Origin: Dendrobates tinctorius
Lineage: Eukaryota
NCBI RefSeq assembly: GCF_039654945.1
Contig: NW_027361707.1
Location: forward strand, 55,738,001-55,802,000
Direction of reading: 5' to 3'
DNA length: 64,000 bases
The position numbers and the translations under genes were made by a program. Numbering within the stretch: position 1 is the stretch's first letter; the number at the start of each line of letters is the position of its first letter. Positions 1-44,042 of the stretch are shown here, in pieces. Below the pieces are notes generated by a model, which saw only the letters and a program-made list of their open reading frames with translations, was not told where the DNA came from and searched no databases.

Positions 1-661
1 ACCATGTCGTGTTTGGAGATCCCCTGTGTGCCTAAACTTTGGAGCTCCCCCACAAATGACCCCATTTTGGAAACAAGACCCCTAAGGAACTTATCTAGAT
101 ACATAGAAAGCACTATGAACCCCCAGGTGCTTCACAGACTTTTATAACGCAGAGCCGTGAAAATAAAAAAACGTTTTTTTTTCCTAAATAAAATTTTTTT
201 AGTCTGCAATTTTTTATTTTCACAAGGATAGCAGGAGAAATTGGCCCCCAAAAGTTGTTGTACAGTTTGTCATGAGTACACTGGTACCCCATATGTGGGG
301 TTTGCAGAGCCCCTTATGTGCCTAAATAGTAGAAACCCCCCACATGTGACCTCATTTTGGAAACTAGACCCCCCAAGGAACTTATCTAGGTGTGTGGTGA
401 GCACCTTGAACCCCCAAGTGCTTCACAGAAGTTTATAATGCAGAGCCGTGAAAGTAAAAAATCATTTCGCTATCGCTCTGATTGGCTGTTTCACTTTTAA
501 CAGCCAATCAGAGTGATCATAGCCACGTGGGGGCGAAGCCTCGCCCCCTTTGGTGAATTACAAAGCCCCCTGTATCTAAGTCATGACACAGGGTATGCGT
601 CATGGGTCGGATTGGCACTGACTTTCATGACGCATACGCTGTGTCACAGGTCAGGAAGGGG
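1..661 (-). mobile_element. Terminal part of a piggyBac-like (TTAA) non-autonomous element, same family as 12534-21971, opposite orientation, runs off the window start
   Basis: Ends ...GGTCAGGAAGGGG then TTAA (662-665). The reverse complement parallels the CCCCTTCACGACCCATGACG end at 17609. 1-470 is the reverse complement of the ~390-bp internal repeat unit. Confidence 0.8.
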
Positions 662-2785: not shown

Positions 2786-4404
<1,619 letters not shown>

Positions 4405-10948: not shown

Positions 10949-12546
10949 TTATGTGTTTGTGAGATTGATGGGATATGGATTTCAGGGGTGCCAAAAAATC
11001 ACTCTAAGTTGTCCATGAAATTTAGATGCAAAGCTAGGGCATGCACCAATTGAATGCTTTACTAAAGACGAGGAAATGACTATACAAACTCAGTCAATCA
11101 GATCTTACAATTCCTTGTGGACACAATTACAAAATGTCAATAAATTATGTAAATGGAGTTAACCTACACTGTAAAGTAAATGTTAAACTGCAAAAACCTT
11201 GTGGTCTCCTGAGGTCAAGGAGAAAAAAAAGAAGCTGTGAAAAAACAGCTTTAGCCTCTTGGGTCAATGAGCACTTTGTAGAAATAAGCAATACCGCTTT
11301 CTTCAATGGACCGACTGGGTTTAAGCAAACCCAAATCAGCTCTGCTAGTGACAAATATCACTATAGGTAGTTGTTTTCCCCAGTAAATGAGATCCTATGA
11401 ATTCTCAAGCAATAGTAAAAAATAATCTATAAAATATTCAACAAAAAATTTTAAGGCGTAGATGTCTTCCACAGGTGTATATCTTTTTTGTCTAAATTTT
11501 TTTTTTGTCTAGCTAGTTATTACATTAGAGGAGTTGTTAACTACTCAAACAAGACCTTCTCAATTACATATCCTCACATGTAAAATACGTAAAACTAGGC
11601 TATATTCATCTCTGGTGCAAGCGCCATTCCAGCAACATTGGCACCAGGTCTGCTGGAACTTGGGAGATGTTGTTAGGTCACATGAATCTTGCCTCTAATC
11701 AGAAGCCACTAATAAGCTGCTTCACTCTCACTTCCTTCAGACAAAAGTGAAATCTGGAGGGGGTGAGAGATCATTAGAAATTCTTACTCCTTACAGATGT
11801 CAGTTTTGCCCAAAGGAAGTGAAAGTGAAGTGGCTCGTTAGCTGCTGTATGGCTGCAGAACTTAAGTGGCATAACATGATGCCAATGTCACTGGAATGGC
11901 AGGGATATCAGAGGTGAGTATAGGCTGATTCTATTTTAGAAGGGGGACTATGGTGATCGAGAATGTGTTATCCGACTGTAGTAAAAAACAAATTTATTAA
12001 TTCCATCTAATATACAAGCAAGCATAACCTAAAATAAAAACAGTGAAAAGATACAATGCAATAAGTAACTAAATAGTACTAAAACATGTAAAAAATAGGG
12101 CACTTAGTTGACACTCTTTTGATCATGAAAGACTGTAGCGCAAAACAGATATATTAATTCAATCTAATATACAGACGATGTAAATGTAACAGCATAACCA
12201 GCCTTAAACTATGCAAAATTTACCACTGTGGATCATGTTGAATGACAAGCTTCGTGTATCTTTAAATACTTTTGCATTGCTTTCTTGTTGAACATTGACT
12301 CATAGTAACTCCTTTCCCCCTAAAGCCTGATTTCACCTTCCTGACTAGGCCAATTTTTACAATTCTGACCACTATCAGTTTTTGAGGTCATAACTCTGAA
12401 ATTCTTCAATGGATCCCACTGATTCTGAGAATGTTTTCTCATGATGTATTGTACTTTATGATAGTGGTAAAATTTCTTTGCTATGACTTGCGTTTATTTG
12501 TGAATAAAGCAGAAATTTGGTGTAAATCTTTAACCTCTTCACGACC

Positions 12547-13185
12547 CATGACGCCTACGTAGGCGTCATGAAAAGTCGTGCCCAAACGACCTATGACGCC
12601 TACGTAGGCGTCATGCTATAAATAGCCCCCCCCTGCGGGTCGGGTGACTGGGGTCACTGAAAGGTCACCCGATCCGCACACAGAGAACACTCTCCAGCTA
12701 ATCCCAGGGGGTGTGGCTTAGCCCCCACGTGCCTACGATCACTCTGATTGGCTGTTAAAAGTGAAACAGCCAATCAGAGCGATTTGTAATATTTCACCAA
12801 TGAAACTTGGTGAAATATTACAATCCAGCCATGGCCGATGCTGCAATAGCATCGGACATGGCTGGACACCGACATCTGACCCCCCCACACCAACTGGCGG
12901 GGCCGATCGGCCCCCGCCACCGATGGACGGCGGCGATCGGTCGCCGCCATCATTATCTGCTCCCCCTCCCCTTCCTATCACTCCCTCCCACCTTCCGAGC
13001 CCCCTGGGACCTCCGATGGTGCTCCCGGTGTCCTGTCGTGGCTCCCGGCGTCCCGGCGTCCGGATCATGGGCGCCGCCATCTTGGAAAATGGTGGGCGCA
13101 TGCGCAGTGCATGAATTTGCCGGCTGCCCGTTCATTTTTCATTTTGATCACTGTGATACACTCTCACAGTGATCAAAATGAAAAA
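12547..13185 (+). promoter_or_regulatory. Palindrome/hairpin-rich, CpG-rich left end with promoter-like motifs (copy 1)
   Basis: 24-bp perfect palindrome CATGACGCCTACGTAGGCGTCATG (12547-12570, repeated at ~12593-12614), inverted CCAAT pair (~12745-12780), GCCGCCATCTTG (13073-13084, YY1-like) and GCGCATGCGC (13096-13105, NRF1-like). Function is inferred. Confidence 0.4.
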
Positions 13186-13264
13186 AAAAGTAAATACACC
13201 CCCCTTTTATCATCCCCATAGCCAGGCGCAAATAAAAAAATAAAAAAAATATTTTTTTTTCCAT

Positions 13265-13640
13265 TTAGGGTTCGAACTAGGGTTAGGGTTGGAATTAGGG
13301 TTATAGATAGGGTTAGGGTTAGAAATAGGGTTAGGGCTAGAATTAGGGTCAGGGTTCGAATTAGGGTTAGGGTTGGAATTAGGGTTAGGGTTGGAATTAG
13401 GGTTAGGGCTGGAATTAGGGTTAGGGCTGGAATTAGGGTTAGGGTTGGAATTAGGGTTAGGGCTGGAATTAGGGTTAGGGCTGGAATTAGGGTTAGGGCT
13501 GGGGTTAGGGTTAGGCTTGTAGTTAGGGTTAGAGTTGGGATTAGGGTTAGGGGTGTGTTGGCATTAGGGTTGTGGTTAGGGCTATTAATAGGGTTGGGTT
13601 AGGGTTAGGGGTGTGTTGGGGTTAGAGTCGGAGATAGAAT
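13265..13640 (+). repeat. Degenerate interstitial telomeric (TTAGGG)n array inside transposon copy 1
   Basis: Runs of TTAGGG with an 18-nt higher-order unit TTAGGGTTAGGG(C/T)TGGAA. Confidence 0.95.
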
Positions 13641-13644
13641 TGAG

Positions 13645-16600
13645 GTGTTTCCACTGCTTAGGCACATCACAGGGTCTCCGAACGCAACATGGCGCCACGA
13701 ATTATTCCAGCCAATTTTGCGTTCAAAATGTCAAACAGCGCTATCTCCATTCCGAGCCCTGACGTGTGCCCAAACAGTGGTTTACCCTCACATATTGGGT
13801 ATCAGCGTACTCAGGAAAAATTGCACAACAACTTTGGGGGTCTAATTTCTCCTGTTACCCTTGGGAAAATAAAAAACTGGGGGCTAAAAAAATGATTTTT
13901 GTGAAAAAAAATGATTTTTTTATTTTCACGGCTCTGAGTTATAAACTTCGGTGAAGCACTTGGGGGTTCAAAGTGCTCATCACACATCTAGATAAGTTCC
14001 TTGGGGGGTCTAGTTTCCAAAATGGGGTCACTTGTGGGGGGTTTCCACTGTTTAGGCACATCACGGGGTCTCCGAACGCGACATGGCGCCACGATTTATT
14101 CCAGCCAATTTTGCGTTCAAAATGTCAAACAGCGCTATCTCCATTCCGAGCCCTGACGTGTGCCCAAACAGTGGTTTACCCTCACATATGGGGTATCAGC
14201 GTACTCAGGAAAAATTGCACAACAACTTTGGGGTCTAATTTCTCCTGTTACCCTTGGGAAAATAAAAAACTGGGGGCTAAAAAAATGATTTTTGTGAAAA
14301 AAAATGATTTTTTTATTTTCATGGCTCTGAGTTATAAACTTCGGTGAAGCACTTGGGGGTTCAAAGTGTTCATCACACATCTAGATAAGTTCCTTGTGGG
14401 GGTCTAGTTTCCAAAATGGGGTCACTTGTGGGGGGTTTCCACTGTTTAGGCACATCATGGGGTCTCCGAACGCGACATGGCGCCACGATTTATTCCAGCC
14501 AATTTTGCATTCAAAATGTTAAACAGCACTCCCTCCATTCCGAGCCCCGACGTGTGCCCAAACAGTGGTTTACCCCCACATATGAGGTATCAGCGTACTC
14601 AGGAAAAATTGCACAACAACTTTGGGGGTCTAATATCTCCTGTTACCCTTGGGAAAATAAAAAATTGGGGGTTAAAAAAATGATTTTTGTGAAAAAAAAT
14701 GATTTTTTTATTTTCACAGCTCTGAGTTATAAACTTCGGTGAAGCATTTGGGGGTTCAAAGTGCTCACCACACATCTAGATAAGTTACTTGGGTGGTCTA
14801 GTTTCCAAAATGGGGTCACTTGTGGGGGGTTTCCACTGTGTAGGTACATCAGAGATTCTGCAAACGTAACATGACACCCGCAGACCATTCCATCAAGTTG
14901 GTATTTCAAAATGTCACTACTTCCCTTCCGAGCCCCGACGTGTGCCCAAACAGTGGTCCCTCCCCACATATTGGGTACCAGCGTACTCAGGACAAACTGG
15001 ACAACTACTTATGAGGTCCAATTTCTTCTGTTACCCTTGGGAATATAAAAGATTGCGGGCTAAAAAATCATTTTTTGAGGAAAAAAAAAGATTTTTTATT
15101 TTCACGGCTCTGCGTTATAAACTTCTGTGAAGCACTTGGGGGTTCAAAGTGCTCACCACACATCTAGATAAGTTCCTTGGGTGGTCTAGTTTCCAAAATG
15201 GGGTCACTTGTGGGGGGTTTCCACTGTTTAGGCACATCAGAGGCTCTGCAAACGTAACATGACGCCCGCAGACCATTCCATCAAGTCGGTATTTCAAAAC
15301 GCCACTACTTCCCTTCCAAGCCCCGACGTGTGCCCAAACAGTGGTCCCTCTCCACATATTGGGTACCAGCGTACTCAGGACAAACTGGACAACAACTTTT
15401 GGTGTCCAATTTCTCCTGTTACCATTGTGAAAATCAAAAATAGCAGGCTAAAAAATCATTTTTTGAGGAAAAAAAAATATTTTTATTTTCACAGCTCTGC
15501 GTTATACACTTCTGTAAAGCACCTGGGGGTTCAAAGTGCTCACTATGCATCTAGATAACTTCCTTAGGGGGTCTAGTTTCCAAAATGGGGTGATTTGTGA
15601 GGGAGCTCCAAAGTGTAGGCAGACAGGGCCTCTCCAAACACGACATGGTGTCCGCTAACGATTGGAGCTAATTTTCCATTCAAAAATGGCGCTCCTTCCC
15701 TTCTGAGCCCTGCCGTGCACCCAAACAGTGGTTCCCCACCACATATGGGGTGCCAGCGTACTCAGGACAAACTGAACAGCATCTTCAGCGGTCCAATTTA
15801 TCCTGTTACCCTTGTGAAAATAAAAAATAGCGGGCTAAAAAATCATTTTTGAGGAAAAAAAATGATTTTTTATTTTCATGGCTCTGCCTTTATAAACTTC
15901 TGTGAAGCACTTGGGGGTTCAAAGTGCTCACTACACATCTAGATAAGCTCCTTGGGGGGTCTAGTTTCCAAAATGGGGTCACTTGTGGGGGGTTTCTACT
16001 GTTTAGGCACATCAGGGGCTCTGCAAGCGCAACATGATGCCCGCAGAACATCCCATCAGTCTGCATTCCAAAATCGCGCTCCTTCCCTTCTGAGCTCTCC
16101 CATGCGCCCAAACAGTAGTTTCCCCTGACATATGGGGTATCGGTGTACTCAGGACAAATTACACAACAACGTTTGTGGTCCAATTTCTCCTGTTAGCCTT
16201 GTGAATATAAAATATAGCGGGCTAAAAAATCATTTTTGAGGAAAAAAAATTATGTTTTATTTTCACTGCTCTGCGTCATAAACTTCTGTGAAGCACTTGG
16301 GGGTTCAGTGTGCTCACCACACATCTACATAAGTTCCTTGGGTGGTCTAGTTTCCAAAATGGGGTCACTTGTGGGGGAGCTCCAATGTTTAGGTACACAG
16401 GGGCTCTCCAAACACGACATGGTGTCCACTAACGATTGGAGATAATTTTCCATTCAAAAAGTCAAATGGTGCTCCTTCCCTTCGGGACCCAGCCGAGTGC
16501 CCAAACAGTGGTTTATGACCACATATGAGGTATCGGTGCACTCAGGAGAAATTGCCCAACAAATTTTAGGATCCATTTTATCCCATTGCCCATGTGAAAA

Positions 16601-17060
16601 TGAAAAAACTGAGGCTAAAAGAAAATTTTTGTGAAAAAAAAGTCCTTTTTTTTACTGATCAATTTGTGAAGCACCTGGGGGTTCAAAGTGCTCACTATGC
16701 ATCTAGATAAGTTCCTTGGAGGGTCTAGTTTCCAAAATGGGGTCACGTGTGGGGGAGCTCCAATGTTTAGGCGCACAGGGACTCTCCAAACGCGACATGG
16801 CAACCGCTAAATATTCCAGCATATTTTCCATTCAAAAAGTCAAATGGTGCTCCTTCCATTCTGAGCTCTGCCGTGCACCCAAACAGTGGTTTATGACCAC
16901 ATATGATGTATCGGTGCACTCAGGAGAAATTGCCCAACAAATTTTAGGATCTATTTTATCCTGTTGCCCATGTGAAAATAAAAAATTGATGCTAAAAGCA
17001 AATTTTTGTTGGAAAAATTAAAATGTTCATTTTTTTCCTTCCACATTGCTTTAGTTGGTG
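13645..17060 (+). repeat. Tandem array of ~9 units of ~380-394 bp inside copy 1
   Basis: Unit starts at ~13647, 14041, 14435, 14829, 15217, 15603, 15993, 16378 and 16755. Each junction carries TCTAGTTTCCAAAATGGGGT. Confidence 0.95.
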
Positions 17061-18370
17061 TGAAGCACCTGAAGGGTTAATAATCTTCTTGAATGTAATT
17101 TTGAGTATCTTGAGGGGTGCAGTTTTTAGAATGGTGTCACTTTTGGGTATTTTCTACCATATAGACCCCTCAAAGTGACTTCAAATGTGAGGTGGTCCCT
17201 AAAAAAAATGGTTTTGTAAATTTTGTTGTAAAAATGAGAAATCGCTGGTCAACTTTTAACCCTTATAACTTCCCAACCCCAAAAAAAATTGTTTCCAAAA
17301 TTGTGCTGATGTAAAGTAGACATGTGGGAAATGTTATTTATTAACTATTTTGTGTCACATAACTCTCTGGTTTAACGGAATAAAAATTCAAAATGTGAAA
17401 ATTGCGAAATTTTCAAAATTTTCGCCAAATTTCCGTTTTTTTTCACAAATAAATGCAAATATTATCGACCTAAGTTTACCACTAACATGAAGCCCAATAT
17501 GTCACGAAAAAACATTCTCAGAATCGCTAGGATCCGTTGAAGCGTTCCTGAGTTATTACCTCATAAAGGGACACTGGTCAATATTGCCAAAAATGGCCAG
17601 GTCATTAACCCCTTCACGACCCATGACGCCTACGTAGGCGTCATGAAAAGTCATGCCCAAATGACCTATGACGCCTACGTAGGCGTCATGCTATAAATAG
17701 CCCCCCTGCGGGTCGGGTGACCAGGGTCACTGAAAGGTCACCCGACCCGCACACAAAGGACCCTTCAGAGTTAACACCTGGGGGTGTGGCTTAGCCCCCA
17801 CGTGCCTACGATCGCTCTGATTGGCTGTTAAAAGTGAAACTGCCAATCAGAGCGATTGTAATATTTCACCAATGAAAATTGGTGAAATATTACAATCCAG
17901 CCATGGCCGATGCTAAAGTAGCAACGGACATGGCAGGACACTGAGACCCGACCCCCCCCCACACCGACTGACGGCACCGATCGGCTGCCGCCACCGTCTG
18001 ACGGCACCGATCGGCAGCCGCCGTCATAATCTGCCCCCGCCTTCCCTCCGCCCCCCCAGCCCTCCGATCACCCCTCCGATCACCCCTCCGATCACCCACT
18101 CTCACCCTCCTTTGTGCCTCCGACCTCCCGCTATACGTCCCGGTGTCCCGCCGTCCAGCGTCATGGGCGCCGCCATCTTGCAAGATGGCGGGCGCATGCG
18201 CAGTGCACCGAATCGAATCTGCAAGGCTGCAGATTCATTTATTTTGATCACTATGATAAACTTTCATAGAGATCAAAATAAAAGAAAAGTAAATCACCGC
18301 CCCCCTTATCACCCCCATAGGTAAGGACAAATAATAAAATAAAAAAAATATATATTTTTTTCTTTTTCCA

Positions 18371-18745
18371 TTAGGGTTAGGTCCAGGGCTAGGGTTAGAG
18401 TTAGGGTTAGGGCTAGGGCTAGGGTTAGGGTTAGGGTTAGGGCTAGGGTTAGGGCTAGGGTTGGAATTAGGGTTAGGGTTAGAAATAGGGTTGAGGTTGG
18501 ACTAAGGGTTAGGGTTGGACTAAGGGTTAGGGTTGGACTTAGGGTTAGGGTTGGACTTAGGGTTAGGGTTGGAATTGGGATTAGGGTTGGCTTGGGTTTG
18601 GGATTACGGTTAGGCTTGTGGTTAGGGTTAGAGTTGGGATTTCGTTAGGGGTGTGTTGGGATTAGGGTTGTGGTTAGGGTTATGATTAGGGTTGGGATTA
18701 GGGTTAGGGGTGTGTTGGGGTTAGGGTTGCAGATAGAATTGAGGG
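18371..18745 (+). repeat. Degenerate interstitial telomeric (TTAGGG)n array inside transposon copy 2
   Basis: TTAGGG/CTAGGG runs and a TTAGGGTTGGAC variant. The 3' degenerate tail aligns with that of 13265-13640. Confidence 0.95.
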
Positions 18746-18746
18746 G

Positions 18747-21390
18747 TTTCCACTGTTTAGGCACATCACAGGGTCTCCAAACGTGACATGGAGCCACCAT
18801 TTATTCCAGCCAATTTTGCGTTCAAAAAGTCAAACGGTGCTCCCTCCATTTCGAGCCCCGACGTGTGCCCAAGCAGTGGTGTACCCCCACTTATGGGGTA
18901 TCAGCGCACTCAGGAAAAATTGCACAACAATTTGGCCATCTAATTTCTCCTGTTACCCTTGGGAAAATAAAAAAATGGGGACTAAAATAATTATTTTTGT
19001 GGAAAAAAAAGATTTTTTATTTTCACGGTTCTGCGTTATAAACTTCTGTGAAGTACTTGGAGGTTCAACGTGCTCACCACACATCTAGATAAGTTCCTTG
19101 GGGGGTTTAGTTTCCAAAATGGGGTCACTTGTGGGGAGTTTCCACTGTTTAGGTACATCAGGGACACTGCAAACGTAACATGACGCCCACAGACCATTCC
19201 ATCAAGTCTTCACTTCAAAGCATCACTACTTCCCTTCCGAGCCCCAACGTGTGCCCAAACAGGGGTCCCCCCCACTTATGGGGTACCAGCGTACTCAGGA
19301 CACACTGGACAACAACTTTTGGGATCCAATTTATCCTGTTACCCTTGTGAAAATAAAAAATAGTGGACTAAAAATCATTTTTTGAGGAAAAAAAATATTT
19401 TTTATTTTCACGGCTCTGCGTTATAAACTTCTGTGAAGCACTTGGGGGTTCAAAGTGCTCACCACACATCTAGATTAGTTCCTTGGGTGATCTAGTTTCC
19501 AAAATGGGGTCACTCGTGGGGGGTTTGCACTGTTTAGGTACATCAGGGGCTCTGCAAACGTAACATGACGCCCGCAGACCATTCCATCAAGTCGGCATTT
19601 CAAAACATCACTACTTCCCTTCTGAGCCCCAACGTGTGCCCAAACAGTGGTCCTCCCCACATATGGGGTACCAGCGTACTCAGGACAAGCTGGACAACAA
19701 CTTTTGGGGTCCAATTTATCCTGTTACCTTTGTGAAAATAAAAAATAGCAGGCTAAAAATTTATTTTTTGAGGAAAAAAAATATTTTTATTTTAACGGCT
19801 CTGCGTTATAAACTTCTGTGTAGCACCTGGGGGTTCAAAGTGCTCAGTATGCATCTAGATAAGTTCCTTAGGGGGTCTAGTGTCCAAAATGGGGTCATTT
19901 GTGGGGGAGCTCCAAAGTTTACGCACACAGGGGCTCTGCAAACACGACATGGTGTCCGCTAACGATTGGAGCTAATTTTCCATTCAAAAAGTCAAATGAC
20001 GCTCCTTCCCTTCTGAGCCATGCCGTGCGCTCAAACAGTGGTTTCCCCCCACATATGGGGTACCAGTGTACTCAGAACAAACTGGACAACAACTTTTGGA
20101 GTCCAATTTATCCTGTTACCCTTGGGAAAATAAAAAATAGCGGGCTAAAAAATCATTTTTGAGGAAAAAAAAATATTTTTTTATTTTCATGGCTCTGCAT
20201 TTATAAACTTCTGTGAAGCACTTGGGGATTCAGAGTGCTCACTACACATCTAGATAAGCTCCTTGGGGTTCTAGTTTCCAAAATGGGGTCACTTGTGGGG
20301 GTTTCTACTGTTTAGACACACAGGGGCTCTGCAAACGCAACATGACGCCCGCAGAACATTCCATCAAAGTCTGCATTCCAAAATGGCGCTCCTTCCCTTC
20401 TGAGCTCTCCCGTGTGCCCAAACAGTGGTTTCCCCCCACATATGGGGTATCGGCGTACTGAGAACACATTGCACAGCAACTTTTGTGGTTCAATTTCTCC
20501 TGTTAGCCATGTGAAAATAAAAAATAGCGGGCTAAAAAATCTTTTTTGAGGAAAAAAAAAAAAAATTTTTATTTTCACTGCTCTGCGTTATAAACTTCTG
20601 TGAAGCACTTGGGGGTTCAAAGTGCTCAGCACACATCTAGATAAGTTCCTTCGGGGGTCTAGTTTCCAAAATGGGGTCACTTGTGGGGGAGCTCCAATGT
20701 TTAGGCACACAGGGGCTCTCCAAATGCGACATGGTGTCCGCTAACGATTGGAGCTAATTTTCCAATCAAAAAGTGACATGGCGCTCCTTCCCTTCGGGGC
20801 CCTGCGGTGCGCCCAAACAGTGGTTTATGACCACATATGAGATATTGATGTACTCAGGAGAAATTGCCCAACAAATTTTAGGATCCATTTTATCCTGTTG
20901 CCCATGTGAAAATGAAAAAACTGAGGCTAAATAAAATTTTTGTGAAAAAAAAAGTACTTTTTTTTTTACAGATCAATTTATGAAGCACCTGGGGGTTCAA
21001 AGTGCATACTATGCATCTAGATAAGTTCCTTGGAGGGTCTAGTTTCCAAAATGGGGTCACTTGGGGGGGAGCTCCAATGTTTAGGCACACAGGTACTCTT
21101 CAAACGCGACATGGCAACCGCTTAATATTCCAGCATATTTTACATTCAAAAAGTAGAATGGCGCTCCTTGCCTTCTGAGCCCTGCCGTGCGCCCAAACAG
21201 TGGTTTATGACAACATATGAGGTATCGGTGTACTCAGGAGAAATTGCCCAACAAATTTTAGGATACATTTTATCCTGCTACCCATGTGAAAATGAAAAAA
21301 CTGATGCTAAAAGAAAATTTTGATTGGAAAAATTAAATTGTCCATTTTTTCATTCCATGTTGCTTTAGTTCCTGTGAAGCACCTGAAGGG
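18747..21390 (+). repeat. Tandem array of ~7 units of ~385-390 bp inside copy 2
   Basis: Unit starts at ~18747, 19138, 19523, 19908, 20300, 20690 and 21070. Confidence 0.95.
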
Positions 21391-24300
21391 TTAATAATCT
21401 TCATGAATGTAGTTTTGAGTAGCTTGAGGGGTTCAGTTTTTAGAATGGTGACACTTTTGGGTATTTTCTGCCATATAGACCCCTCAAAGTGACTTCAAAT
21501 GTGAGGTGGTCCCTAAAAAAAAATGGTTTTGTAAATTTTGTTGTAAAAATGAGAAATCGCTGGTCAACTTTTAACCCTTATAACTTCCTAACGAAAAAAA
21601 ATGTTGTTTCCAATATTGTGCTGATGTAAAGTAGACATGTGGGAAATGTTATTTATTAACTATTTTGTGTCATTTTTATTCTGGTTTAACAGAATAAAAA
21701 TTCAAAATTTGAAAATTGCAAAATTTTCGCCAAATTTCCATTTTTTCACAAATAAATGCAAAAATTATCGACCTAAATTTACCACTATCATGAAGCCCAA
21801 TATGTCACGAAAAAACAGTCTCAGAATCGCTAGGATGCGTTGAAGCGTTCCTGAGTTACTACCTCATAAAGGGACATTGGTCAAAATTGCTAAAAATGGC
21901 CTGGTCATTAAGGTCAAAATAGGCTGGGTCATGAAGGGGTTAAGGTCAAAATAGGCTGGGCCATGAAGGGGTTAAAAATGCAATTTTCAAACTTTTAATT
22001 TTTATGCCCTTAAATCAGAGCGTCATATTGCCCAAAATAGTTAATAAATAATATTTCCCATATGTCTACTTAACATCAGCGCAATCTTTGAAACATAATT
22101 TTTTTGTTAGTAAGATATAAGGGTTAAAATTTGACCATCATTTTCTCATTTTTACAACAAAATTTTCAAATCCATTTTTTTAGGGATCACCTCACATTTG
22201 AAGTGACTTTGAGGGGTTTATATGATGGAAAATACCCAAAAGTGACATCATTTTAAAAACTGCACCCCTCAAGGTACGCAAAACCACATTCAAGTAGTTT
22301 GTTAACTCTTCAGGTGCTTCACCGGAATTTTTGGAATGTGGAAGAAAAAAATAAGCATTTACTTTTCTTTCACAAAAATTTTCACTTAGACCTTTTTTTA
22401 TTTTTGCAAGGGTAACAGGAGAAAGTGGACCATACAGTTTGTTGTGCAATTTCTCCTGAGCATGCTGATATCCCAAATGTGGGGGAAATCCACTGTTTGA
22501 GCACATGACAGGGCTGGGAAGGGAAAGAGCGCCATTTCACTTTCTGAATGTAAAATTTGCTGGCATAATTAGCAGACACCATGTCATGTTTGGAGAGCCC
22601 CTGATGTGCCTAAACAGTGCAAACCCCCAACAAATGACACCATTTTGGAAAATAGACCTCTTAGGGAACCTATCTAGATGTGTATTGAGCACCTTGAACT
22701 CACAAGTGCTTCACTGAAGTTTATAACGTAATGCCGTGAAAATAAAAAAATAACATTTTTCCCAGACAAATCTTTTTTAGCTCCAAATTTTGCATTTTCA
22801 TAAGGGTAACAGGAGAAAGTGCTTCATACAATTTGTTGTACAACTTCTCCTGAGTATGCAGATACCCAATATGTGGAGGAAAACAACTGTATGTGTGCAT
22901 GGCAGAGCTTGGAAAGGAAGGAACGCCGTTTGACTTTTTGAATGTAAAATTTGCTGGAATAATTAGCGGATGCCATGTCACGTTTGGAGAGCTGCTGATG
23001 TGCCTTAAACAGTGGAAACCCCCAACAAGTGAAACAATTTTGGAAACTAGAGAACTTATCTAAATTTTTATTGAGCACCTTGAACCCACATGTGCTTCAC
23101 AGAAATTTATAACGTTAAGCCGTTAAAATAAAAAGATCACATTTTTCTTGGGTAAATCTTTTTAGCTCCAAATTTTGTATTTTCACAAGGGTAACAGAAA
23201 AATATTGCGCCCAAAATTTGTTGTGCAACATCTCCCGATAGCTCATATGTCATCAAAAACTACTTTTGAGGCACAGTGCAATGCTCAAAACAGAAGAAGC
23301 GCCACATTATAGTACAGATTTTGCTCCACTTGTTTGAGGGTGCCATGTTACAATGGCAGAGTCTCTCATTTGCCAACACAGCAGAAATCTCCATATGTGA
23401 CCCCATTTTACAAACTAAACCTCTCAATGAATTCATCTAGGGGTGCAGTGATTATATTAACACCACAGGTGTGTTACAGACTTTTATACCATTGTGCAGT
23501 GAAGATAAAATAATGTCCATTTTTACCACCAAGATTGTGTGTTAGCCCCAAGTTTTTAATTTTTATACTGGGAAATGGGCAAAAATGGCACCAAAATTTA
23601 TCATTTATCCCACAATTACTACTGAATATGGCAATACCCCATATGTGGCTGTGCAGTACTACTTAGCCATATGGAGAGACTCTGGATGGACGAAATGCTA
23701 TATGCCTCCTAGAAGGCAGATATTCCAAGAATAGTTTGTGGATTTAATATAAAGAGCCCCTAAGTGAGAGAAAAGCAGGATCCCCCCTCAAATGACTTTA
23801 CGTTGGAAATTATAACCCTTTGGGAATTTAACTACAGATGTAGTGACAATTTTCTATAGGTGTTTTCCAGAAACAAGCAGCAGTGGATGTTGCTGAGCGA
23901 AAATTGCAAACTGCCATTGTAGTAACCAGCACATTATGCCCAGCTCATGTTTCTGGAGACACACACCCGTATGTTAGGTGGGCTTTCATCACTACAGAAA
24001 TGCCAAACATGTGGGCGCTAAATGTGGTTTAGGCACGCTGGGGCTGAGAAGGCAGGGAGGCATTTGGATTTGGGAGCGGAGAATTTGCTAAATTTCTTTT
24101 GAGAAATGAGAAGCCATTTTGCTTTTCCAGAGCCTTTGTGCTACCAGTAACGTGGAAGCCCTCTATATTTCCGCTAACAGGTGATGGACCTGAGTAGGGA
24201 CTAGCTTTTCTTGTGGATTGAGTGTAAGCTTTTATTGGGAACATTTTACATTACATTACGGATCGCATTTATCCGGTGCTATACGCTGAGCACTTACATT

Positions 24301-24802
24301 TCAGTTTCCATCTAAATCTCCAAGTAATGTGACAGATGGAACCTCCAAAGTATCCATTCACTATAATGAGGAAGCAGAGTTACTCTGGACTCCATCTGGC
24401 TTATCTTGAACAGTGTCCTTCTTTTCAGAAGAACACAAAACTGTAGCCGATGGCACTTTTATGGAATCCTTAAAAGATAGACACTGCCGGATCAAAGGTC
24501 TTATGGCATCCACAGTGTCTCTATCTGCCTCATTATAGGGAATCTTCCACTGGGGCTCTGTCTGTATCACGTATTACAGAGACTTACACTGAAACCCCGA
24601 TGTAAGCGCTCAGCGTAGAGCGCAGTATATATGTGCGCCGAGCCTTACTGCTATCTTTGGGAGACAGTAGGTGAAGAATTGGTTTCATTTATTTTTTACA
24701 CTGTTCCTCATGCGGTATAAATGATTAGGTGGCTTTATTTTTATACAAGATTTATAATCGGGTTTTTATTTTTGACTTCCGTGATACACTAAAAGACACC
24801 CA

Positions 24803-25228
24803 GGCTACTTTCACACTTGCGTTTTTTTGCGCTGCACACCGTGTGCAGTGCAAACGCACATAAAAAACACATCATGCGTTTGTGTGCGTTTTTTGTGGGT
24901 TTGGGTGCGTTTTTTAAAAAAAAGCATGCTTTTTTGCGCATACGTGCGCATTACCATGCGCACGTATGTGCACCCATAGACTAGAATGGGTGTTTGGGTG
25001 AAAAAAAACGCATTGCGTGCGCATGCGTTTTTTTGGGGCAAATCGGGCGCACAAAAAATGCAACAGGATGCATTTTGTGCGCCTGAGTGCGCACTACAAA
25101 AAAACGCATGTGCATACAAACGCGTACAAACGCATGTGTATACGCACCCATGTAAAGCATAGGAAAAAACGCATGCTTTTTTTGCGCAAAAAAACAGCGC
25201 AAAAAAAAACGCAAGTGTGAAACCAGCC
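24803..25228. mobile_element. PIF/Harbinger-type MITE nested in the outer piggyBac-like element
   Basis: TIR GGCTACTTTCACACTTGCGTTTTTTT / AAAAAAACGCAAGTGTGAAACCAGCC followed by TAA. Internal AAAACGCA repeats. Confidence 0.75.
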
Positions 25229-27433
25229 TAATTATTGCGAAAACTAGTTTTTGCATCACCATATTTGGAGAACTATAATTTTTCCTTATTTCTGCCGACA
25301 GAGTCATGATATGGCTTGTTTTTTTGCGGGACGAGCTGATGTTTTCATTGTTTTTTTTATAACATCTCGCATGTGGTAAAATTGGTAAGACTGCTTTATT
25401 CTTTGGGTCAGTACAATTACAATGATACCCAGTTTATATAGTTTTTTATGTTTTGGGGCTTTTACACAATAAAAACTATTTTATAGAAAAAATAATTATT
25501 TTTGCATTGTTTTATTCTGACAGCTATAACTTTTTTTTCCGCTGATGGAGCTGTATAGCTGTATGGCGGCTTGATTTTTGCAGGACAAGATGACCATTTC
25601 TATTTGCATTTGTCATTTTGTCTTTTTGATCGCATTTTATTGCACTTTTTGTTTGGCGGTATGATGATAAAGCATTGTTTTTTCACGCGGTTTTTACTTA
25701 TTTTTTCATGTTTTTCACTGAAGGGGTTACATATGTACTTTTATTGTTTGGTTTTTTTATATAAATAAATGTATTTATTGGAAAAATATTTGTTTCTTTT
25801 TTATTTATTTGGTGATTTTTGAACATTTTTTTACACTTTTTAATTTTTTTAACTTTTTTACATTGGGTCATCCTGGGACATCACTTTATAGTGTCAGATC
25901 ACTCGTCTGATACTCTGCACTGCAGAGTATTTAATCAGACAGCATCTATCAGGCAAGGAAAGAGGCATGTCAGCATCTGCTCTCATCAGGAGCTCTCATG
26001 CCACCTTCCCGGCAGAACTCTGAAGGACCCCGTGGCCATCTTGCGGTAAGTGGGTCTCCATGGAGATCATTAGGGCAATGGGATCGCATCACGTTTTCCT
26101 GATGGAATCATGCAGGGACTTCGTTCCCTGCGCGATGCTACTCTATGCTGCTGGTTAAATACCCACGATTGGTGCTAGCACCATTCATGGGCGCTGTGGC
26201 AGGGTATCAGATCTCACACAGAGCTGAAACTTGCACCTGATTGCTTCGGCGCTGAGCATGAGTCCGTGCCATCGTGCCACCGTACATATACTTCTCTTTG
26301 CAGGAACTCAGCTCCCACAGAGCATGCCCATGTCGGGAAGGAGTTAAGTCACATCCAAACAAGATAAACCGCAGCACCCCATAAAGCCACCCCAACATTT
26401 GAAGTGAATCACATTGTGTTAAACAGAAAAAAATAAATAGACCTAAGCCAGATTTTTGGGGGTCTAAAAATTACAATATAAGCTAAAATTTGCCAAAAGC
26501 TGGTGAATTTTCTAACAAAGTTTAGGCACACTCATAATATGAAATCTGATTATTTATTTTTATGCCAGTTTTTGGGTCCATAAGGTTTTGTTTTAACTCA
26601 GTATGCTCTGGGTATAATGTTATTGTTGTCTTTTTTTCCAATGCCCATCTGTATATTAAAATTTGTAAAAAGAATGCATGTGCAAGATAACAAATTAACA
26701 ATACTGCTACAAATAAAATAAAAACACATAGAAACACATTACTTGCCTAAATAACATTTTTAATGAATTTTTTTCCTGCTTTTAAAAAAAACAAAAAACT
26801 ATCAATTGTGGATGAAGTCTGTATTCAAAGTCTTGTTTTAGAATTTTTCATTTTCGATTCTACATACTATATATAAAATATAACTGATGCACTGATGTTA
26901 ATCACAGCAGGGGCAGACATGCCATTGATGCAATCTGTGCAGCCGCACATGGGCCCAAAACGTAGGAGGCCCATTTCATCCTACAAAGCAAGTGGAATTG
27001 TGATTTATAACGACTATTGGACTATAGTGGGCCCATACATTGTTCTTGTAACAGGGGCCCTCATCTATCTGTGTCTTCCAGTAATGCAAAGTGAGGGTAA
27101 TGATATCAAACCATGTAAGGGTCATAATGCCTATTTGGCGTTGATGTTAAAAATTATAGAATATATTAGTCGGTTATTAATTTTGTATATGGGCTAATGC
27201 AAATGTAATAAATCACGCTGATGAGAATTGTTAGTACTCGCATATTGTCCTTTTTTTGTAAGAAAGCAAATTCTATTCATCAGGTTCTAGCATTTTGTGA
27301 CTAACTTGTAAAGACCCCTATTAACTTAATTCTTATGCTTTTATTAATTTTATTAACTTAATTCTTATACTTTTATTAACTATAATTAAAATCCAGACCG
27401 ATAACACAAATGTAATCACGCTGATGTAAAACA

Positions 27434-32010: not shown

Positions 32011-33203
32011 CCATATATTCTCGAGTATAAGCCAACCTGAGTATAAGAAGAGGCTCCTTATTTTTCAACAAAAAACAGGGAAAACTTATTGACTCGAGTA
32101 TAAGCCTAGGGTGGGAAATGCAGCAGCTACTGGTAAATTTCAAAAATAAAAATAGATACCAACAAAAGTAAAATTAATTGAGACATCAGTATGATAAATG
32201 TTTTTGAATTTCCATATTAAATCAGGAGCCCCATATAATGCTCCATAAAGTTCATGATGGGCCCGATAAGAAGCTCCATGCAAAATACACCCCACATAAT
32301 GCTCCATAAAGTTCATGATGGGCCCCAAAAGATGCTCCATACAAAAAAATATTCCCCATATAATGCTGCATAAAAGGTTAATAATATGCCCCATAAGATG
32401 CTTCATAGAATAATATGCCCCATAAGATGATCCATAGAATAATATGCTCTTGCTGCTGTGATTAAAAAGAAATTACATACTTCTCATCGCTTGGGGCAAG
32501 GTGCCGGTGTTCTGAGCAGGTGGGGACATCAGCACGCTATGGGGGCCAGGTGTCGGAGTCGCTGCTGGCTCATGCCCTTGCCACTTGTAATATTCACCTG
32601 TTCCCGTTCCACCTCCGTGTGCTGCTGTGTCTTCCGGGTCCTCTGGCTGTGACTGTTCAGGCAGAGGGGGCGCACTAAACACATCATCGCACCCTCTGAC
32701 CTGAACATTACAGCCAGAGGACACGGAAGACACAGCGGCGCTTGGTGGTGGAACAGGGACAGGTGAATATCGCATGACTCCCACCATCCTCCCCGTCATA
32801 CTCACCCGCTCCTGGCACGGTCTCTGCACCTCCCTGCTTCTTCGTCATTCCCAGGTGGCAGCTCATTCCAGTGCTCAGCGGTCACATGATACCGCTCATT
32901 AAAGTAATGAATATGCACTCCACACCTATGGAAGTGGAGTTGCGTGCATATTCATTACTTTAATGAGCGGTACCACGTGACCGCTGAACACAGGAAGAGC
33001 TGCCGGCGCCGGAGACTATCTGAGAAGCAGGGAAGTGCAGAGACCATGCCAGGAGGGGGTGAGTATGATGTGACAGCCACAGGCTCCTGCCGCTCCCCCT
33101 CCTCCGCCGACCCCCTGGGACAATGACTCAAGTATAAGCTGAGACGGGCACTTTCAGCCTAAAAAAATGGGATGAAAAACTACTTATACTTGAGTATATA
33201 CGG
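32011..33203. mobile_element. Tc1/mariner-superfamily (pogo/Tigger-like) non-autonomous element
   Basis: TA-CCATATATTCTCGAGTATAAG ... CTTATACTTGAGTATATACGG-TA. Internal CCCATA..ATGCTCCATA minisatellite (32225-32445) and a ~110-bp hairpin (32875-32990). Confidence 0.75.
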
Positions 33204-36416: not shown

Positions 36417-37509
36417 TTTTTTCAACTTCAGTTTTTTTTCAGATGGTGTTATGTTTTCATAAATAATTTGTTGAAATTTCATTAATTCCATTCATTCTTC
36501 TACCCATGAAATGTTTTCACTATCATTGGCTGCATCGGGCTTGTTTAGATGTTCTTGTACATACTTCTGCCCTTGAATATTATGGTTTTCGTCTTAAAAC
36601 TCTTCCATGAAAGCCATATTTGTGAAGGTGTCTCTGAGTAGTAGAACAATTTACCGCAATCCCAGAGTCTGCTAAATCTTTCTGAAGGTCTTTTCCAGTC
36701 AAGCGGGGTTCTGATTTGCCTTTCTAGCAATCCTACGAGCAGCTCTCACTGACATTTTGCTTGGTCTTCCCAACAATTTCTTGACCTCCATGGTTCCTGT
36801 TAACTGCCATTTCTAAATTACATCTTCAATCTTCTTATAACCTTCTCTTGCTCTGTGTTGTCCTCCACCATTTTAATTTTCAGAATGCTAGGCAGCTGCT
36901 TAGAAGAACCCTTGACTGCTGTTTTTTGACACAGGGTTAGAGGAGGCTGGGCTTTTATAAAGTTGGGAAATTTTCATCACTTGTAACGATGATAGTGAAC
37001 AAGCCATAACCTTAACAAGCTAATTAAGGTCTGAAACCTTGGTCAAACTTATATGATCACTAGTGTTGAGCTTTCCGATACCGCAAGTATCGGGTATCGG
37101 CCGATATTTGCCGTATCGGAATTCCGATACCGAGTACCGATTCTTTTTTCGTATCGGATACCGGAATCGGAAGTCCAAAATGCAATGAGCCACTTTTGTG
37201 GCTCTGATTGGCTGCCGAAATGACGTCATCATGATACGCCGTCAGTTCGGGCCTTCGGGGGGTCTGTGCCGACTGTCCAGGGGTCTGTACCGGCCTGCCG
37301 GGGGGGCTGTGCCGACTGCCCGGGGGTCTGTACCGGCCTGCCGGTGGTCTGTGCAGGCTCCGGGGGTCTGTGCAGGCATCGTCCGATGGGACTACAAGTC
37401 CCATCGGGCGATGCCTGCTACCATGACAGTGATTGACACATTAGCCAATGATGGGACAGTAGTAGTCCCATCATCCGGCTAATGTGTTGAATGTAAAAAA
37501 AAAAAAAAA

Positions 37510-38110
37510 AATACATGCTACATACTACATGCATGCTACATACATAATACATACATAATACATATATACTACATGCATGCAACATACATACAACATATAT
37601 ACTTCATGCATGCAACATGCATACTACATATATACTACATGTAACATACATACTACATATATACTACATGCAACATACATGCTACATACATACTACATGC
37701 TACATACATGCAACATACTACATGCATACTACATACATACTACATACATGCTACATACATACTACATATATACCACATGCATGCAGCATGCATACTACAT
37801 ATATACTACATGTAACATACATACTACATATATACTACATGCAACATACATGCTACATACTACATACATGCTACATACATACTACATACTACATACATGC
37901 TACATACTACATGCATACTACATACAGTACATACTACATACATGCTACATACATACTACATATATACCACATGCATGCAACATGCATACTACATATGTAC
38001 TGCATATATACTACATGCATGCAACATACATATATACTACATGCAACATACATATATACTACATACAATACATACATATAGACATACAGTACATATAACA
38101 TAGAGTACAT
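37510..38110. repeat. Complex (TACA/CATG/CATA) microsatellite, mirrored at 38675-38971 and 40578-40832
   Basis: Low-complexity ATACTAC/ATGC arrays that form part of both palindrome arms. Confidence 0.9.
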
Positions 38111-38971
38111 ACTCACCGTCACTTGTCACTTTGATCCCCAAAGCCATTGTCGCCTGAGGAATAAATATCAAAATAAAAAAACACCAATATACTTACCCCG
38201 ATCCGCAGAAGTCCACGAGGGTCCCACGTCGATCTTGCATGGAGAACAGCAGCATCAGCTGATGCTACCGTTCTCTACCAGCTCCAGGAATACAATGACG
38301 GAAGGTAGGTATCTTTCCGCACTGTATTCCTCCACCACTGTTAAAAAAAAAAAGTCCCTAGTCTCACTTTATGCCATTGCTGCGTGGGAAATTCCCACGC
38401 AGCAATGGCATAAAGTGAGACTAGGGACTTTTTTTTACAGTGGTGGAGGAATACAGTGCGGAAGGATACCTACCTTCCGTCATTGTATTCCTGGAGCTGG
38501 TAGAGAACGGTAGCATCAGCTGATGCTGCTGTTCTCCACGCAAGATCGACGTGGGACCCTCGTGGACTTCTGCGGATCGGGGTAAGTATATTGGTGTTTT
38601 TTTATTTTGATATTTATTCCTCAGGTGACAATGGCTTCGGGGATCAAAGTGACAAGTGACGGTGAGTATGTACTCTATGTTATATGTACTGTATGTCTAT
38701 ATGTATGTATTGTATGTAGTATATATGTATGTTGCATGCATGTAGTATATATGCAGTATATATGTAGTATGCATGTTGCATGCATGTGGTATATATGTAG
38801 TATGTATGTAGTATGTATGTAGTATGCATGTAGTATGTAGCATGTATGTAGCATGTAGTATGTATGTAGCATGTATGTAGTATGTAGCATGTATGTTGCA
38901 TGTAGTATATATGTAGTACGTATGTTACATGTAGTATATATGTAGTATGCATGTTGCATGCATGTGGTATA

Positions 38972-40577
38972 CAGTGGGGAAAAAAAGTATTTAGTCAGTC
39001 AGCAATAGTGCAAGTTCCACCACTTAAAAAGATGAGAGGCGTCTGTAATTTACATCATAGGTAGACCTCAACTATGGGAGACAAACTGAGAAAAAAAAAT
39101 CCAGAAAATCACATTGTCTGTTTTTTTTTCATTTTATTTGCATATTATGGTGGAAAATAAGTATTTGGTCAGAAACAAGCAATCAAGATTTCTGACTCTC
39201 ACAGACCTGTAACTTCTTCTTTAAGAGTCTCCTCTTTCCTCCACTCATTACCTGTAGTAATGGCACCTGTTTAAACTTGTTATCAGTATAAAAAGACACC
39301 TGTGCACACTCTCAAACAGTCTGACTCCAAACTCCACTATGGTGAAGACCAAAGAGCTGTCAAAGGACACCAGAAACAAAATTGTAGCCCTGCACCAGGC
39401 TGGGAAGACTGAATCTGCAATAGCCAACCAGCTTGGAGTGAAGAAATCAACTGTGGGAGCAATAATTAGAAAATGGAAGACATACAAGACCACTGATAAT
39501 CTCCCTCGATCTGGTGCTCCACGCAAAATCCCACCCCGTGGGGTCAGAATGATCACAAGAACGGTGAGCAAAAATCCCAGAACCACGCGGGGGGACCTAG
39601 TGAACGAACTGCAGAGAGCTGGGACCAATGTAACAAGGCCTACCATAAGTAACACACTACGCCACCATGGACTCAGATCCTGCAGTGCCAGACGTGTCCC
39701 ACTGCTTAAGCCTGTACATGTCCGGGCCCGTCTGAAGTTTGCTAGAGAGCATTTGGATGATCCAGAGGAGTTTTGGGAGAATGTCCTATGGTCTGATGAA
39801 ACCAAACTGGAACTGTTTGGTAGAAACACAACTTGTCGTGTTTGGAGGAAAAAGAATACTGAGTTGCATCCATCAAACACCATACCTACTGTAAAGCATG
39901 GTGGTGGAAACATCATGCTTTGGGGCTGTTTCTCTGCAAAGGGGCCAGGACGACTGATCCGGGTACATGAAAGAATGAATGGGGCCATGTATCGTGAGAT
40001 TTTGAGTGCAAACCTCCTTCCATCAGCAAGGGCATTGAAGATGAAACGTGGCTGGGTCTTTCAACATGACAATGATCCAAAGCACACCGCCAGGGCAGCG
40101 AAGGAGTGGCTTCGTAAGAAGCATTTCAAGGTCCTGGAGTGGCCTAGCCAGTCTCCAGATCTCAACCCTATAGAAAACCTTTGGAGGGAGTTGAAAGTCC
40201 GTGTTGCCAAGCGAAAAGCCCAAAACATCACTGCTCTAGAGGAGATCTGCATGGAGGAATGGGCCAACATACCAACAACAGTGTGTGGCAACCTTGTGAA
40301 GACTTACAGAAAACGTTTGACCTCTGTCATTGCCAACAAAGGATATATCACAAAGTATTGAGATGAAATTTTGTTTCTGACCAAATACTTATTTTCCACC
40401 ATAATATGCAAATAAAATGAAAAAAAAACAGACAATGTGATTTTCTGGATTTTTTTTTCTCAGTTTGTCTCCCATAGTTGAGGTCTACCTATGATGTAAA
40501 TTACAGACGCCTCTCATCTTTTTAAGTGGTGGAACTTGCACTATTGCTGACTGACTAAATACTTTTTTTCCCCACTG
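38972..40577 (+). mobile_element. Intact Tc1/mariner transposon (1606 bp)
   Basis: TA TSDs (38970-38971, 40578-40579). ~207-bp TIRs begin CAGTGGGGAAAAAAAGTATTTAGTCAG and look identical by eye. Confidence 0.97.
39339..40361 (+). CDS. Tc1-family DD34E transposase, 340 aa, uninterrupted
   Basis: N-terminal HTH ([12 protein letters not shown]...RSGAPRKI), [15 protein letters not shown] and [11 protein letters not shown], with 34 residues between the second D and E. Ends KGYITKY. Confidence 0.97.
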
Positions 40578-40967
40578 TATATGTAGTATGTATGTAGTAT
40601 GCATGTAGTATGTTGCATGTACGTAGCATGTAGTATATATGTAGCATGTATGTAGTATGTAGCATGTATGTTGCATGTAGTATATATGTAGTATGTATGT
40701 TACATGTAGTATATATGTAGTATGCATGTTGCATGCATGTAGTATATATGTTGTATGTATGTTGCATGCATGTAGTATATATGTATTATGTATGTAGTAT
40801 GTATGTAGCATGTATGCAGTATGTAGCATGTATTTTTTTTTTTTTTTTTACATTCAACACATTAGCCGGATGATGGGACTACTACTGTCCCATCATTGGC
40901 TAATGTGTCAATCACTGTCATGGTAGCAGGCATCGCCCGATGGGACTTGTAGTCCCATCAGACGATG

Positions 40968-41270
40968 CCTGCACAGACCCCCGGAGCCTGCACAGACCAC
41001 CGGCAGGCCGGCACAGACCCCCGGGCAGTCGGCACAGACCCCCGGGCAGTCGGCACAGACCCCCGGAGCCTGCACAGACCACCGGCAGGCCGGCACAGCC
41101 CCCCAGGCAGTCGGCACAGACCCCCGGGCAGTCGGCACAGACCCCTGGAGCCTGCACAGACCACCGGCAGGCCGTACAGACCCCCGGGCAGTCGGCACAG
41201 ACCCCCGGGCAGTCGGCACAGACCCCCGGCAGGCCGGCACAGCCCCCTGAAAGGCCCGGTACAGACCCCA
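40968..41270. repeat. GC-rich ~21-bp minisatellite (CACAGACCCCCGGGCAGTCGG), mirrored by a shorter array at 37255-37375
   Basis: Directly visible tandem units. Confidence 0.85.
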
Positions 41271-41773: not shown

Positions 41774-43379
41774 TATATATTTTTTTTGCATAAAATATTA
41801 AGGAATGTGTATTTTATTGCATGTACCGTATATCTTTAGGTCCTTTTTAGATCATTTCATCTTCAACTTGGTTAACTCTTCACAATAACAGTAAACTTAA
41901 CCAAAGGTGCCCAAACTTTTACATGCCACTGTATAGTTTTGGCCTCAGACAATTAATAAAGTCCCATTGCTGCCAGTACCACCGACAGTATATGCTGATG
42001 ACACTAAGATCTACCTTTGTGGCCCAAATGTCACCTTTCTGCTGTCCAGAATCCGTGTCTATCATCCTCCATCTTCTCATTATATTTCCCAAAACTCAAT
42101 GTGGATAAAACCAAACTCATCATCTTACCTACTTCTCTGTTAAATCTCCTATCTGATCTATCTATCACAATAAATGACATCACACTTTCCCCTATTTCTG
42201 CTGCCTCGGAGTAATTCTTTATTCTGCCCTGTTCTTTGAACTGTACATCCAAGCTCTTACCACCTCTTGTCACCTCCAATGTTAGTGCATTGCCCTCATG
42301 ATCTCACACCATGGATACCGCAATATTCTTCTCTGTGGCCACCCAGCTAATACTCGCGCACCTCTCCAGTCCATCCTTAACTATTCCACCAAATTAATCC
42401 ATGTCTCTCCACACTACTCCCCCACTTCTCCCCTCTACAAATCCCTTCATTGGCTTACAAGTCCCCAAAGAATCTAGTTAAAACTACTAACATTGACCCA
42501 TTATCTGACTCCTCCATATATCTCTGAACTAATCTATTGATATCTCCCTACATGTCCTCCTGTCCTCCTAAGGGTCCCATTACATTTAGCAATGCACCAG
42601 CGATCCTGACAATGATACGACCTGGTTAGGATTGCTGGTTCATCGCTAAATGGTCGCTAGTGAGCTGCCAAACAGGCAGATCTCACCAGCGACGCAGCAG
42701 CGATAAGCGATCCGTCGGCGGTCGCTCTTACCTGTTACACCGCAGCGATGATGACTAGAGATGAGCGACTTTGCCTTTTCTGGGTCGAGTCGGGTTTCAT
42801 GAAACCCGACTTTCTCAAAAGTCGGGTAGAACGAAATCGGCAGACTATAGGGAAAAGTCGAGGGTCCGACTGAAACACGAAACCCAATGCAAGTCAATGG
42901 AGAAGCAAAGTCGGCAGGGAGTGGAGGACAGTAAACACACCTACAGTGCCCATTTCAATGCCAAAAACATCAATTCTTATTACTGAAGCTTGTCAACCTT
43001 AATTTACTTTATAATAATAGTTACGCACTGAAAACTGGGGGTTATTTGGATAAAGTTGTGGGGGGGTAGGGCTGGCTCAAGGTTTTCATGTGCCCTGGGC
43101 CAAAGAGCGCCCCTTTAACACATACCACAACTCATGATGCTCCGATACGGCACAGAAAGATAGGTATAGTACAATGACAAATACTTCACTGCTTACATGA
43201 CATGACTGATCTATTTTAAATTCTACAATAGCTCAAAAAAAGGACAGTATAATACTCCATATAGTATTATGGCCACGACATTGTGCGCCATACAGAATAA
43301 TGAGCCCCATATATTTCTCCATACAGAATAATTGGTCATATATAATGTTCCATACAGTATACTCCACATAATGCTACAG

Positions 43380-44040: not shown

Positions 44041-44042
44041 AT

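Follow-up and report, generated by a model that had tools for sequence, protein, structure and literature searches.

How telomere-like DNA comes to lie at interstitial sites is a question raised here by a single 64,000-nucleotide stretch of the Dendrobates tinctorius genome (NCBI RefSeq assembly GCF_039654945.1, contig NW_027361707.1, positions 55,738,001 to 55,802,000 of the forward strand), called the window below, with positions counted from its first letter. The initial annotation of the window described a piggyBac-like, non-autonomous transposon family carrying a telomeric (TTAGGG)n array as fixed cargo. Our analysis suggests, with a probability of roughly 0.8, that the carrier is a non-coding, non-autonomous cut-and-paste transposon inserting at TTAA, in which the array is an inherited passenger, and that its insertions seed interstitial telomere-like tracts. 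Two copies, A (12534-21971) and B (17609-21939), carry the argument. Their ends and the sequence around them are organized as follows:

12530-12533, + strand: TTAA target-site duplication (TSD) left of copy A
12534-12548, + strand: left terminal inverted repeat (TIR) of copy A, CCTCTTCACGACCCA, with 1 mismatch against the consensus terminus (terminus scan)
17037-17608, + strand: AT-rich right arm of copy A as far as the TTAA entered by B (when joined to 21944-21975, aligns to B's right arm)
17605-17608, + strand: TTAA duplication left of copy B, within A's right arm
17609-21939, + strand: the complete copy B, inserted within A (left arm 17609-18369; right arm 21341-21939)
21940-21943, + strand: TTAA duplication right of copy B
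21944-21971, + strand: final 28 bp of copy A with its right TIR, displaced by the insertion of B
21972-21975, + strand: TTAA duplication right of copy A

Reading through 12300-22200 and scanning for termini placed both copies exactly, to the base, where they had first been annotated, each with its termini and flanking TTAA. The 15-nt inverted terminus CCCCTTCAYGACCCA reads inward from each of the four ends of A and B, and TTAA followed by CCCCTTCAYGACCCA occurs five times in the window against 0.05 occurrences expected from shuffled sequence. TTAA is present at every readable end (5/5: both ends of A, both of B and the left end of a relative, D, described below). The site entered by B is a TTAA 28 bp inside A's right end. 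Because A's last 28 bp come after B's complete end, the terminus appears doubled at 21908-21975, where Tandem Repeats Finder reports 2.1 copies of a 32-bp period at 97%. When B and one TTAA are removed in silico, A's rejoined right arm matches B's at 94.5%, gapless at the junction; B is therefore a nested insertion with a 4-bp duplication, and not a tandem duplication.

Each copy holds one telomere-like array, at an equivalent position. The approximate size and placement first proposed (about 370 bp, some 730-760 bp from the left end) agree with the measured values:

13265-13640, + strand: telomere-like array of copy A, G-strand on +, 376 bp, 731 bp from the left end
18370-18729, + strand: telomere-like array of copy B, G-strand on +, 360 bp, 761 bp from the left end

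These arrays contain all tandem TTAGGG of the window. To call them telomeric (TTAGGG)n was an overstatement, and degenerate telomere-like tract is the part of that description that stands: perfect hexamers number 30 in A (48% of bases) and 24 in B (40%), and the longest perfect run in either array is three units. Both arrays are built on an 18-bp higher-order unit, TTAGGGTTAGGGYTGGAA repeated seven times in A, with a T,C,C pattern across units that points to 54-bp duplications, and T(T/A)AGGGTTAGGGTTGGAC repeated four times in B, to the same design. The higher-order variants do differ between copies, as first noted, although the 12-mer assigned to B was a misreading of its 18-bp unit. The double TTAGGG site TTAGGGTTAGGG is present 10 times in A and 6 times in B, and the 3' tails of both arrays carry common non-hexamer variants such as GGGGTGTGTTGGG.

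An alignment of A to B recovers homologous sequence on both sides of the arrays, with the following identities:

Terminus and palindromes: 92%
GC block: 72% overall, with a conserved core
Hairpin and A-rich stretch: 82%
Array, 5' part: 83%
Array, degenerate 3' tail: 91.4%
388-bp units, position by position: 90-93%
Right arm: 94.5%

The array tail has diverged like the ordinary single-copy parts of the element, and the array was therefore inherited by both copies from their common ancestor, not gained twice. The tails, said from the outset to be shared, match down to their odd variants. Equivalent position, homologous flanks, a common tail and bounds set by TIRs and TTAA likewise bear out the claim that the array belongs to the mobile unit, and its proposed evolution within the element is seen in copy-specific 18-bp and 54-bp duplications and in length-variant joints among contigs of four organisms. 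All parts of the composite move together, and local duplication alters its arrays. Being inherited inside an element of many copies, the tract differs from interstitial telomeric sequences (ITS) inserted by telomerase or repair, including TERC-ITS, and no telomerase-RNA fragment lies beside the array, nothing in 12300-22200 exceeding Rfam thresholds. The first array could have arisen when telomerase or repair inserted it into an ancestral element, or by capture of other DNA. Growth of the array from the G-rich end of the 388-bp unit was also considered; the likeness extends over just ~10 nt beside the junction and lends the idea no support.

Outside the array, the element (4.3-5.1 kb) is modular:

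12547-12615, + strand: two copies of the 24-nt perfect palindrome CATGACGCCTACGTAGGCGTCATG, sub-terminal (identical in B at 17622-17690)
12738-12866, + strand: chain of three conserved palindromes, with high contig depth in four organisms
12871-13130, + strand: GC-rich block resembling a short CpG island (copy A; 68% GC, CpG observed/expected (o/e) 0.89)
13135-13264, + strand: hairpin with 22-nt arms, then an A/T-rich stretch with AATAAA motifs, directly upstream of the array
13641-17036, + strand: internal tandem repeat of ~388 bp in copy A, 8.6 units, position-differentiated
18730-21340, + strand: 388-bp repeat of copy B, 6.4 units

The 24-nt sub-terminal palindromes are candidate transposase-binding repeats, and repeated GGTCA motifs lie close to the right end of the AT-rich right arm (~600 bp). 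The first palindrome of the conserved chain holds two inverted CCAAT boxes (CTGATTGGCTG ... CAGCCAATCAG) and is near-identical in A (12738-12783), B (17807-17860) and D (480-530, minus strand). It is the best-preserved internal piece of the left arm, has deep contig coverage in four organisms, and looks to be under constraint. Across copies the GC block spans 260-290 bp, with 68-69% GC and a CpG o/e of 0.9-1.05 against 0.49 for the window; from a motif reading, we take its conserved core to resemble YY1-like and NRF1-like sites. Between A and B the hairpin has a single change on both arms that retains pairing. Neighboring 388-bp units inside one copy are just 66-84% alike, and units A3-A8 match B1-B6 one-to-one at 90-93%; the first unit has been triplicated in place in A only (94-97% identity).

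Pfam searches of all window open reading frames (ORFs) of at least 130 aa, and of the ORFs in the repeat and right arm, found no piggyBac domain and no coding relic within the element, and a protein-database search with the 121-aa left-arm ORF found no relatives; the element is non-coding. At a permissive Rfam threshold, 12300-22200 yielded sub-threshold hairpin look-alikes only and no telomerase RNA, and no tRNA genes were found. Its TIRs, TSD and internal tandem array, and its lack of coding capacity, place the element among the tandem-repeat-bearing non-autonomous DNA transposons.

The original description as piggyBac-like is consistent with these features but unproven. Members of the superfamily are recognized by TTAA duplication, termini of 12-19 nt starting C[C/A/T][C/A/T], precise excision and a transposase, and their termini are classically CCC...GGG (PMC5381638). 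Here the TTAA duplication is found at A, at B and at the left end of D, the B-in-A site is rebuilt with a single TTAA, and the 15-nt terminus at the four ends of A and B is of the CCC type. Duplication and termini together indicate that the element is probably a piggyBac superfamily member.

Two further relatives show how the family varies:

12306-12529, - strand: right arm of an older copy, C, host of the A insertion, 75% match to B's right arm (end approximate)
21976-24100, - strand: remainder of copy C, with right arm and diverged 388-bp units (upper limit approximate)
1-661, - strand: relative D, running off the window, with TTAA at 662-665 and a related terminus, CCCCTTCCTGACC

Copy C is ~72-75% similar, its flanking TTAA has decayed to TTAC, and A sits in a TTAA of its right arm; no array is recognizable in its remains at 21976-24100. 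Both insertions, A into C (12530) and B into A (17605), went into a family member's AT-rich right arm, at a TTAA no more than ~230 bp from that member's end; with the family so abundant this could be coincidence, or it could reflect a preference for the family's own right arm. A short element at 24800-25235, with inverted ends GGCTGGTTTCACACTTGCG ... CGCAAGTGTGAAAGTAGCC and a GCGCA/TGCGC-rich body, adjoins the remains of C. In relative D, ~190 bp of left arm, with the identical CCAAT palindrome and related sub-terminal palindromes, pass straight into the 388-bp repeat at a different phase. The cargo first described as fixed in the family is therefore fixed in the A/B lineage and not in all relatives, D being without an array.

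To trace the family beyond the window, we searched sequencing runs with the left arm; one organism held ~0.6 of the sampled words and three others small shares. Contigs from one run of each of these four organisms were placed on 17500-19150 at 80% likeness, and 77,000-135,000 contigs per run fell on this 1.65 kb of copy B. In 4/4 runs the contigs cover the array's higher-order part (18508-18563) as well as the junction of array tail and 388-bp repeat, and single contigs span 18674-18858 in two of the runs (organisms C and D). The array thus extends beyond the two copies in which it was first seen, and this coverage in four organisms indicates that the cargo is old and abundant. The third hexamer ends at positions 18538 and 18556, where copy B reads cytosine and the majority alternative listed is adenine; guanine, expected of a true telomere repeat, is not among the listed variants, and the variant in these contigs is therefore that of the element itself. 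Joints going back by 36-52 bp inside the array occur in all four runs, and therefore array length varies by slippage. Within the left arm, the GC block at 17948-18115 is covered in the source organism only; its core (18116-18227) has coverage in all four organisms, as does the CCAAT palindrome. Exact searches of metagenome contigs for the 24-nt palindrome, and for a 22-mer conserved in the 388-bp unit, returned no matches.

Several observations weigh against the reading of an array-bearing transposon, and they bear on what else the locus could be. Relative D has neither GC block nor telomere-like array, and the cargo is not obligatory. Contig placement left out 18328-18492 as repeats, and with it the left-arm/array junction in the other genomes. 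In all four organisms, the array tail and 388-bp units are covered several-fold to ~100-fold more deeply than the terminus and left arm, where contigs are collapsed and summed depth is not copy number; an array-plus-repeat module may thus also be present outside the element. This depth, and the joining of D to the 388-bp repeat at another phase without an array, are what would be expected if array and repeat were mainly a satellite module, residing elsewhere in long arrays or other transposon families and captured once by this TTAA element. We consider this rather unlikely, since palindromic termini also assemble poorly, all 388-bp occurrences in the window (A, B, C and D) lie inside elements with these ends, and the units are differentiated by position (66-84% between neighbors, 90-93% between copies), unlike a homogenized satellite. 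Much further from plausible is the proposal that A and B arose by local tandem duplication, or that their arrays have independent origins, so that in either case no array ever transposed. The copies do lie head to tail. However, the 28-bp end of A beyond the end of B, flanked by TTAA on either side, is what a nested insertion leaves behind, and this junction anatomy already contradicts a duplication; A and B are moreover 8-10% diverged, their arrays have idiosyncratic degenerate tails in common, and the identical junction is found in contigs of four organisms.

The identity of the carrier and the role of its cargo have been weighed in the same way. Further evidence against the preferred reading is that no piggyBac transposase was found in the 64-kb window, whose transposase ORFs are Tc1-like and hAT only, and the TTAA-looking flanks could belong to another superfamily, an outcome that we regard as rather unlikely. 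PIF/Harbinger elements duplicate the 3 bp TWA; a 3-bp reading here needs termini offset by one base, while the symmetrical reading is a 4-bp TTAA, and the B-in-A site is rebuilt with exactly one TTAA. Kolobok elements, of great abundance in clawed frogs, do duplicate TTAA, as found here, but have AG/AGGRR termini (PMC6004289), in place of which these copies have CCCC...GGGG. As to function, the array could be cargo that benefits element or host, through UUAGGG RNA resembling telomeric repeat-containing RNA (TERRA) made from the promoter-like arm, or through recruitment of TRF1/TRF2. The CpG-rich block (o/e 0.9-1.05) is placed as for TERRA, upstream of the G-strand, such that read-through from the promoter-like arm would yield UUAGGG RNA; the YY1/NRF1-like core and CCAAT boxes are conserved, the core being kept in four organisms; and with 10 + 6 TTAGGGTTAGGG double sites, TRF1/TRF2 binding to the arrays is plausible in principle. 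Yet AATAAA motifs stand between CpG block and array, the degenerate array has a 5' part in free turnover (83% identity), relative D has no array, and the promoter-like, CpG-rich arm is most simply a relic of the transposase promoter or 5' region of the parent element. We therefore find functional cargo quite unlikely.

Returning to the transposon with a passenger array, a transposase supplied in trans would bind the termini, and probably the sub-terminal palindromes too, and the element would be excised and reinserted at TTAA with duplication of that site, steps that we infer from the behavior of the family. The array, most simply a passenger, is carried along to each new site and turns over internally by slippage or unequal exchange, as in the 18-bp and 54-bp duplications. 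Since the array travels with the element, each insertion would therefore seed a short, degenerate interstitial telomere-like tract, and neither chromosome fusion nor telomerase action at the insertion site would be needed.

The window holds other elements. An apparently intact and very young Tc1/Sleeping-Beauty-like transposon occupies 38968-40581, with TIRs of 211 nt that are 100% complementary (38968-39178 and 40371-40581) and an uninterrupted ORF of 340 aa (39339-40361) with HTH_SB, HTH_Tnp_Tc3_2 and DDE_3 domains. It lies within a large palindromic structure (37295-41049) whose coding core is Tc1-like and not hAT. A broken Tc1-like transposase is found at 3005-4067 on the minus strand, in two ORFs, with HTH_SB/HTH_Tnp_Tc3_2 and a weak DDE_3 match; one of the window's Tc1-like transposases clusters with chordate groups. 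Relics of a hAT transposase lie at 46345-49182 on the minus strand, with zf-BED (48688-49182) and the hAT C-terminal dimerization domain (46345-46755) each in its own ORF. Two arrays of a related ~31-bp repeat, ATAATGCTCCA...GGGCCCCAT, occupy 32229-32447 and 43248-44042, the second with a 151-bp higher-order period, and a separate 252-bp repeat of 3.1 units lies at 50149-50935.

The element resembles non-autonomous piggyBac-like elements, of which human MER75/MER85-type MITEs (miniature inverted-repeat transposable elements) provide further examples, in its putative sub-terminal repeats, its lack of coding capacity and its presumed mobilization in trans; it differs from them in its size (4.3-5.1 kb) and in a modular build that includes a telomere-like array and a long 388-bp repeat. 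It also shares TTAA duplication and short CCC...GGG termini with non-autonomous piggyBac-like elements, the TxpB/Uribo lineage of Xenopus among them (PMC5381638, PMC6004289). Xmix and Xstir of Xenopus (PMC6004289) and DTC84 of the clam Donax (PMC3879986) are likewise TIR-bounded, non-coding MITEs that spread internal tandem repeats, and all of them, together with the present element, blur the boundary between transposon and satellite. Xmix, however, is of the Kolobok type, with AGGRR termini, and telomere-type hexamer arrays are reported neither for Xmix/Xstir nor for DTC84. As an internal degenerate TTAGGG tract, the array is also like the short and heterochromatic ITS of vertebrates. Documented routes to ITS are insertion at breaks, in some cases together with telomerase-RNA fragments (PMC8537989), and relics of fusion, whereas the present tract lies inside a TSD-bounded transposon without a telomerase-RNA match. 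Reviews name transposition of mobile elements as a possible origin of ITS, without a worked example (PMC6410037, PMC9693754, PMC6803351), and our literature search, which did not extend to Repbase/Dfam, found no described TTAA element family with telomere-like cargo.

Interstitial telomeric signals are routinely taken as scars of fusion or healed breaks, above all in amphibian and reptile cytogenetics. These data provide a sequence-level case of a defined, abundant TTAA-inserting element with inherited cargo in several species, and thus a concrete vehicle for the transposon hypothesis. They caution against inferring rearrangements from interstitial telomeric signals, a point that is useful to cytogeneticists if unsurprising in kind, and the terminus, 388-bp unit and array form a defined probe set. 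The element is moreover a clear example of microsatellite-like and satellite-like arrays in one transposon. It is a doubtful extension that the family, in many thousands of copies in at least four related species, could explain most non-terminal TTAGGG signals in their karyotypes, and that its conserved CpG-rich arm could drive TERRA-like transcripts or its arrays bind shelterin at dispersed sites; were this true, the element would be a mobile source of telomere-type chromatin.

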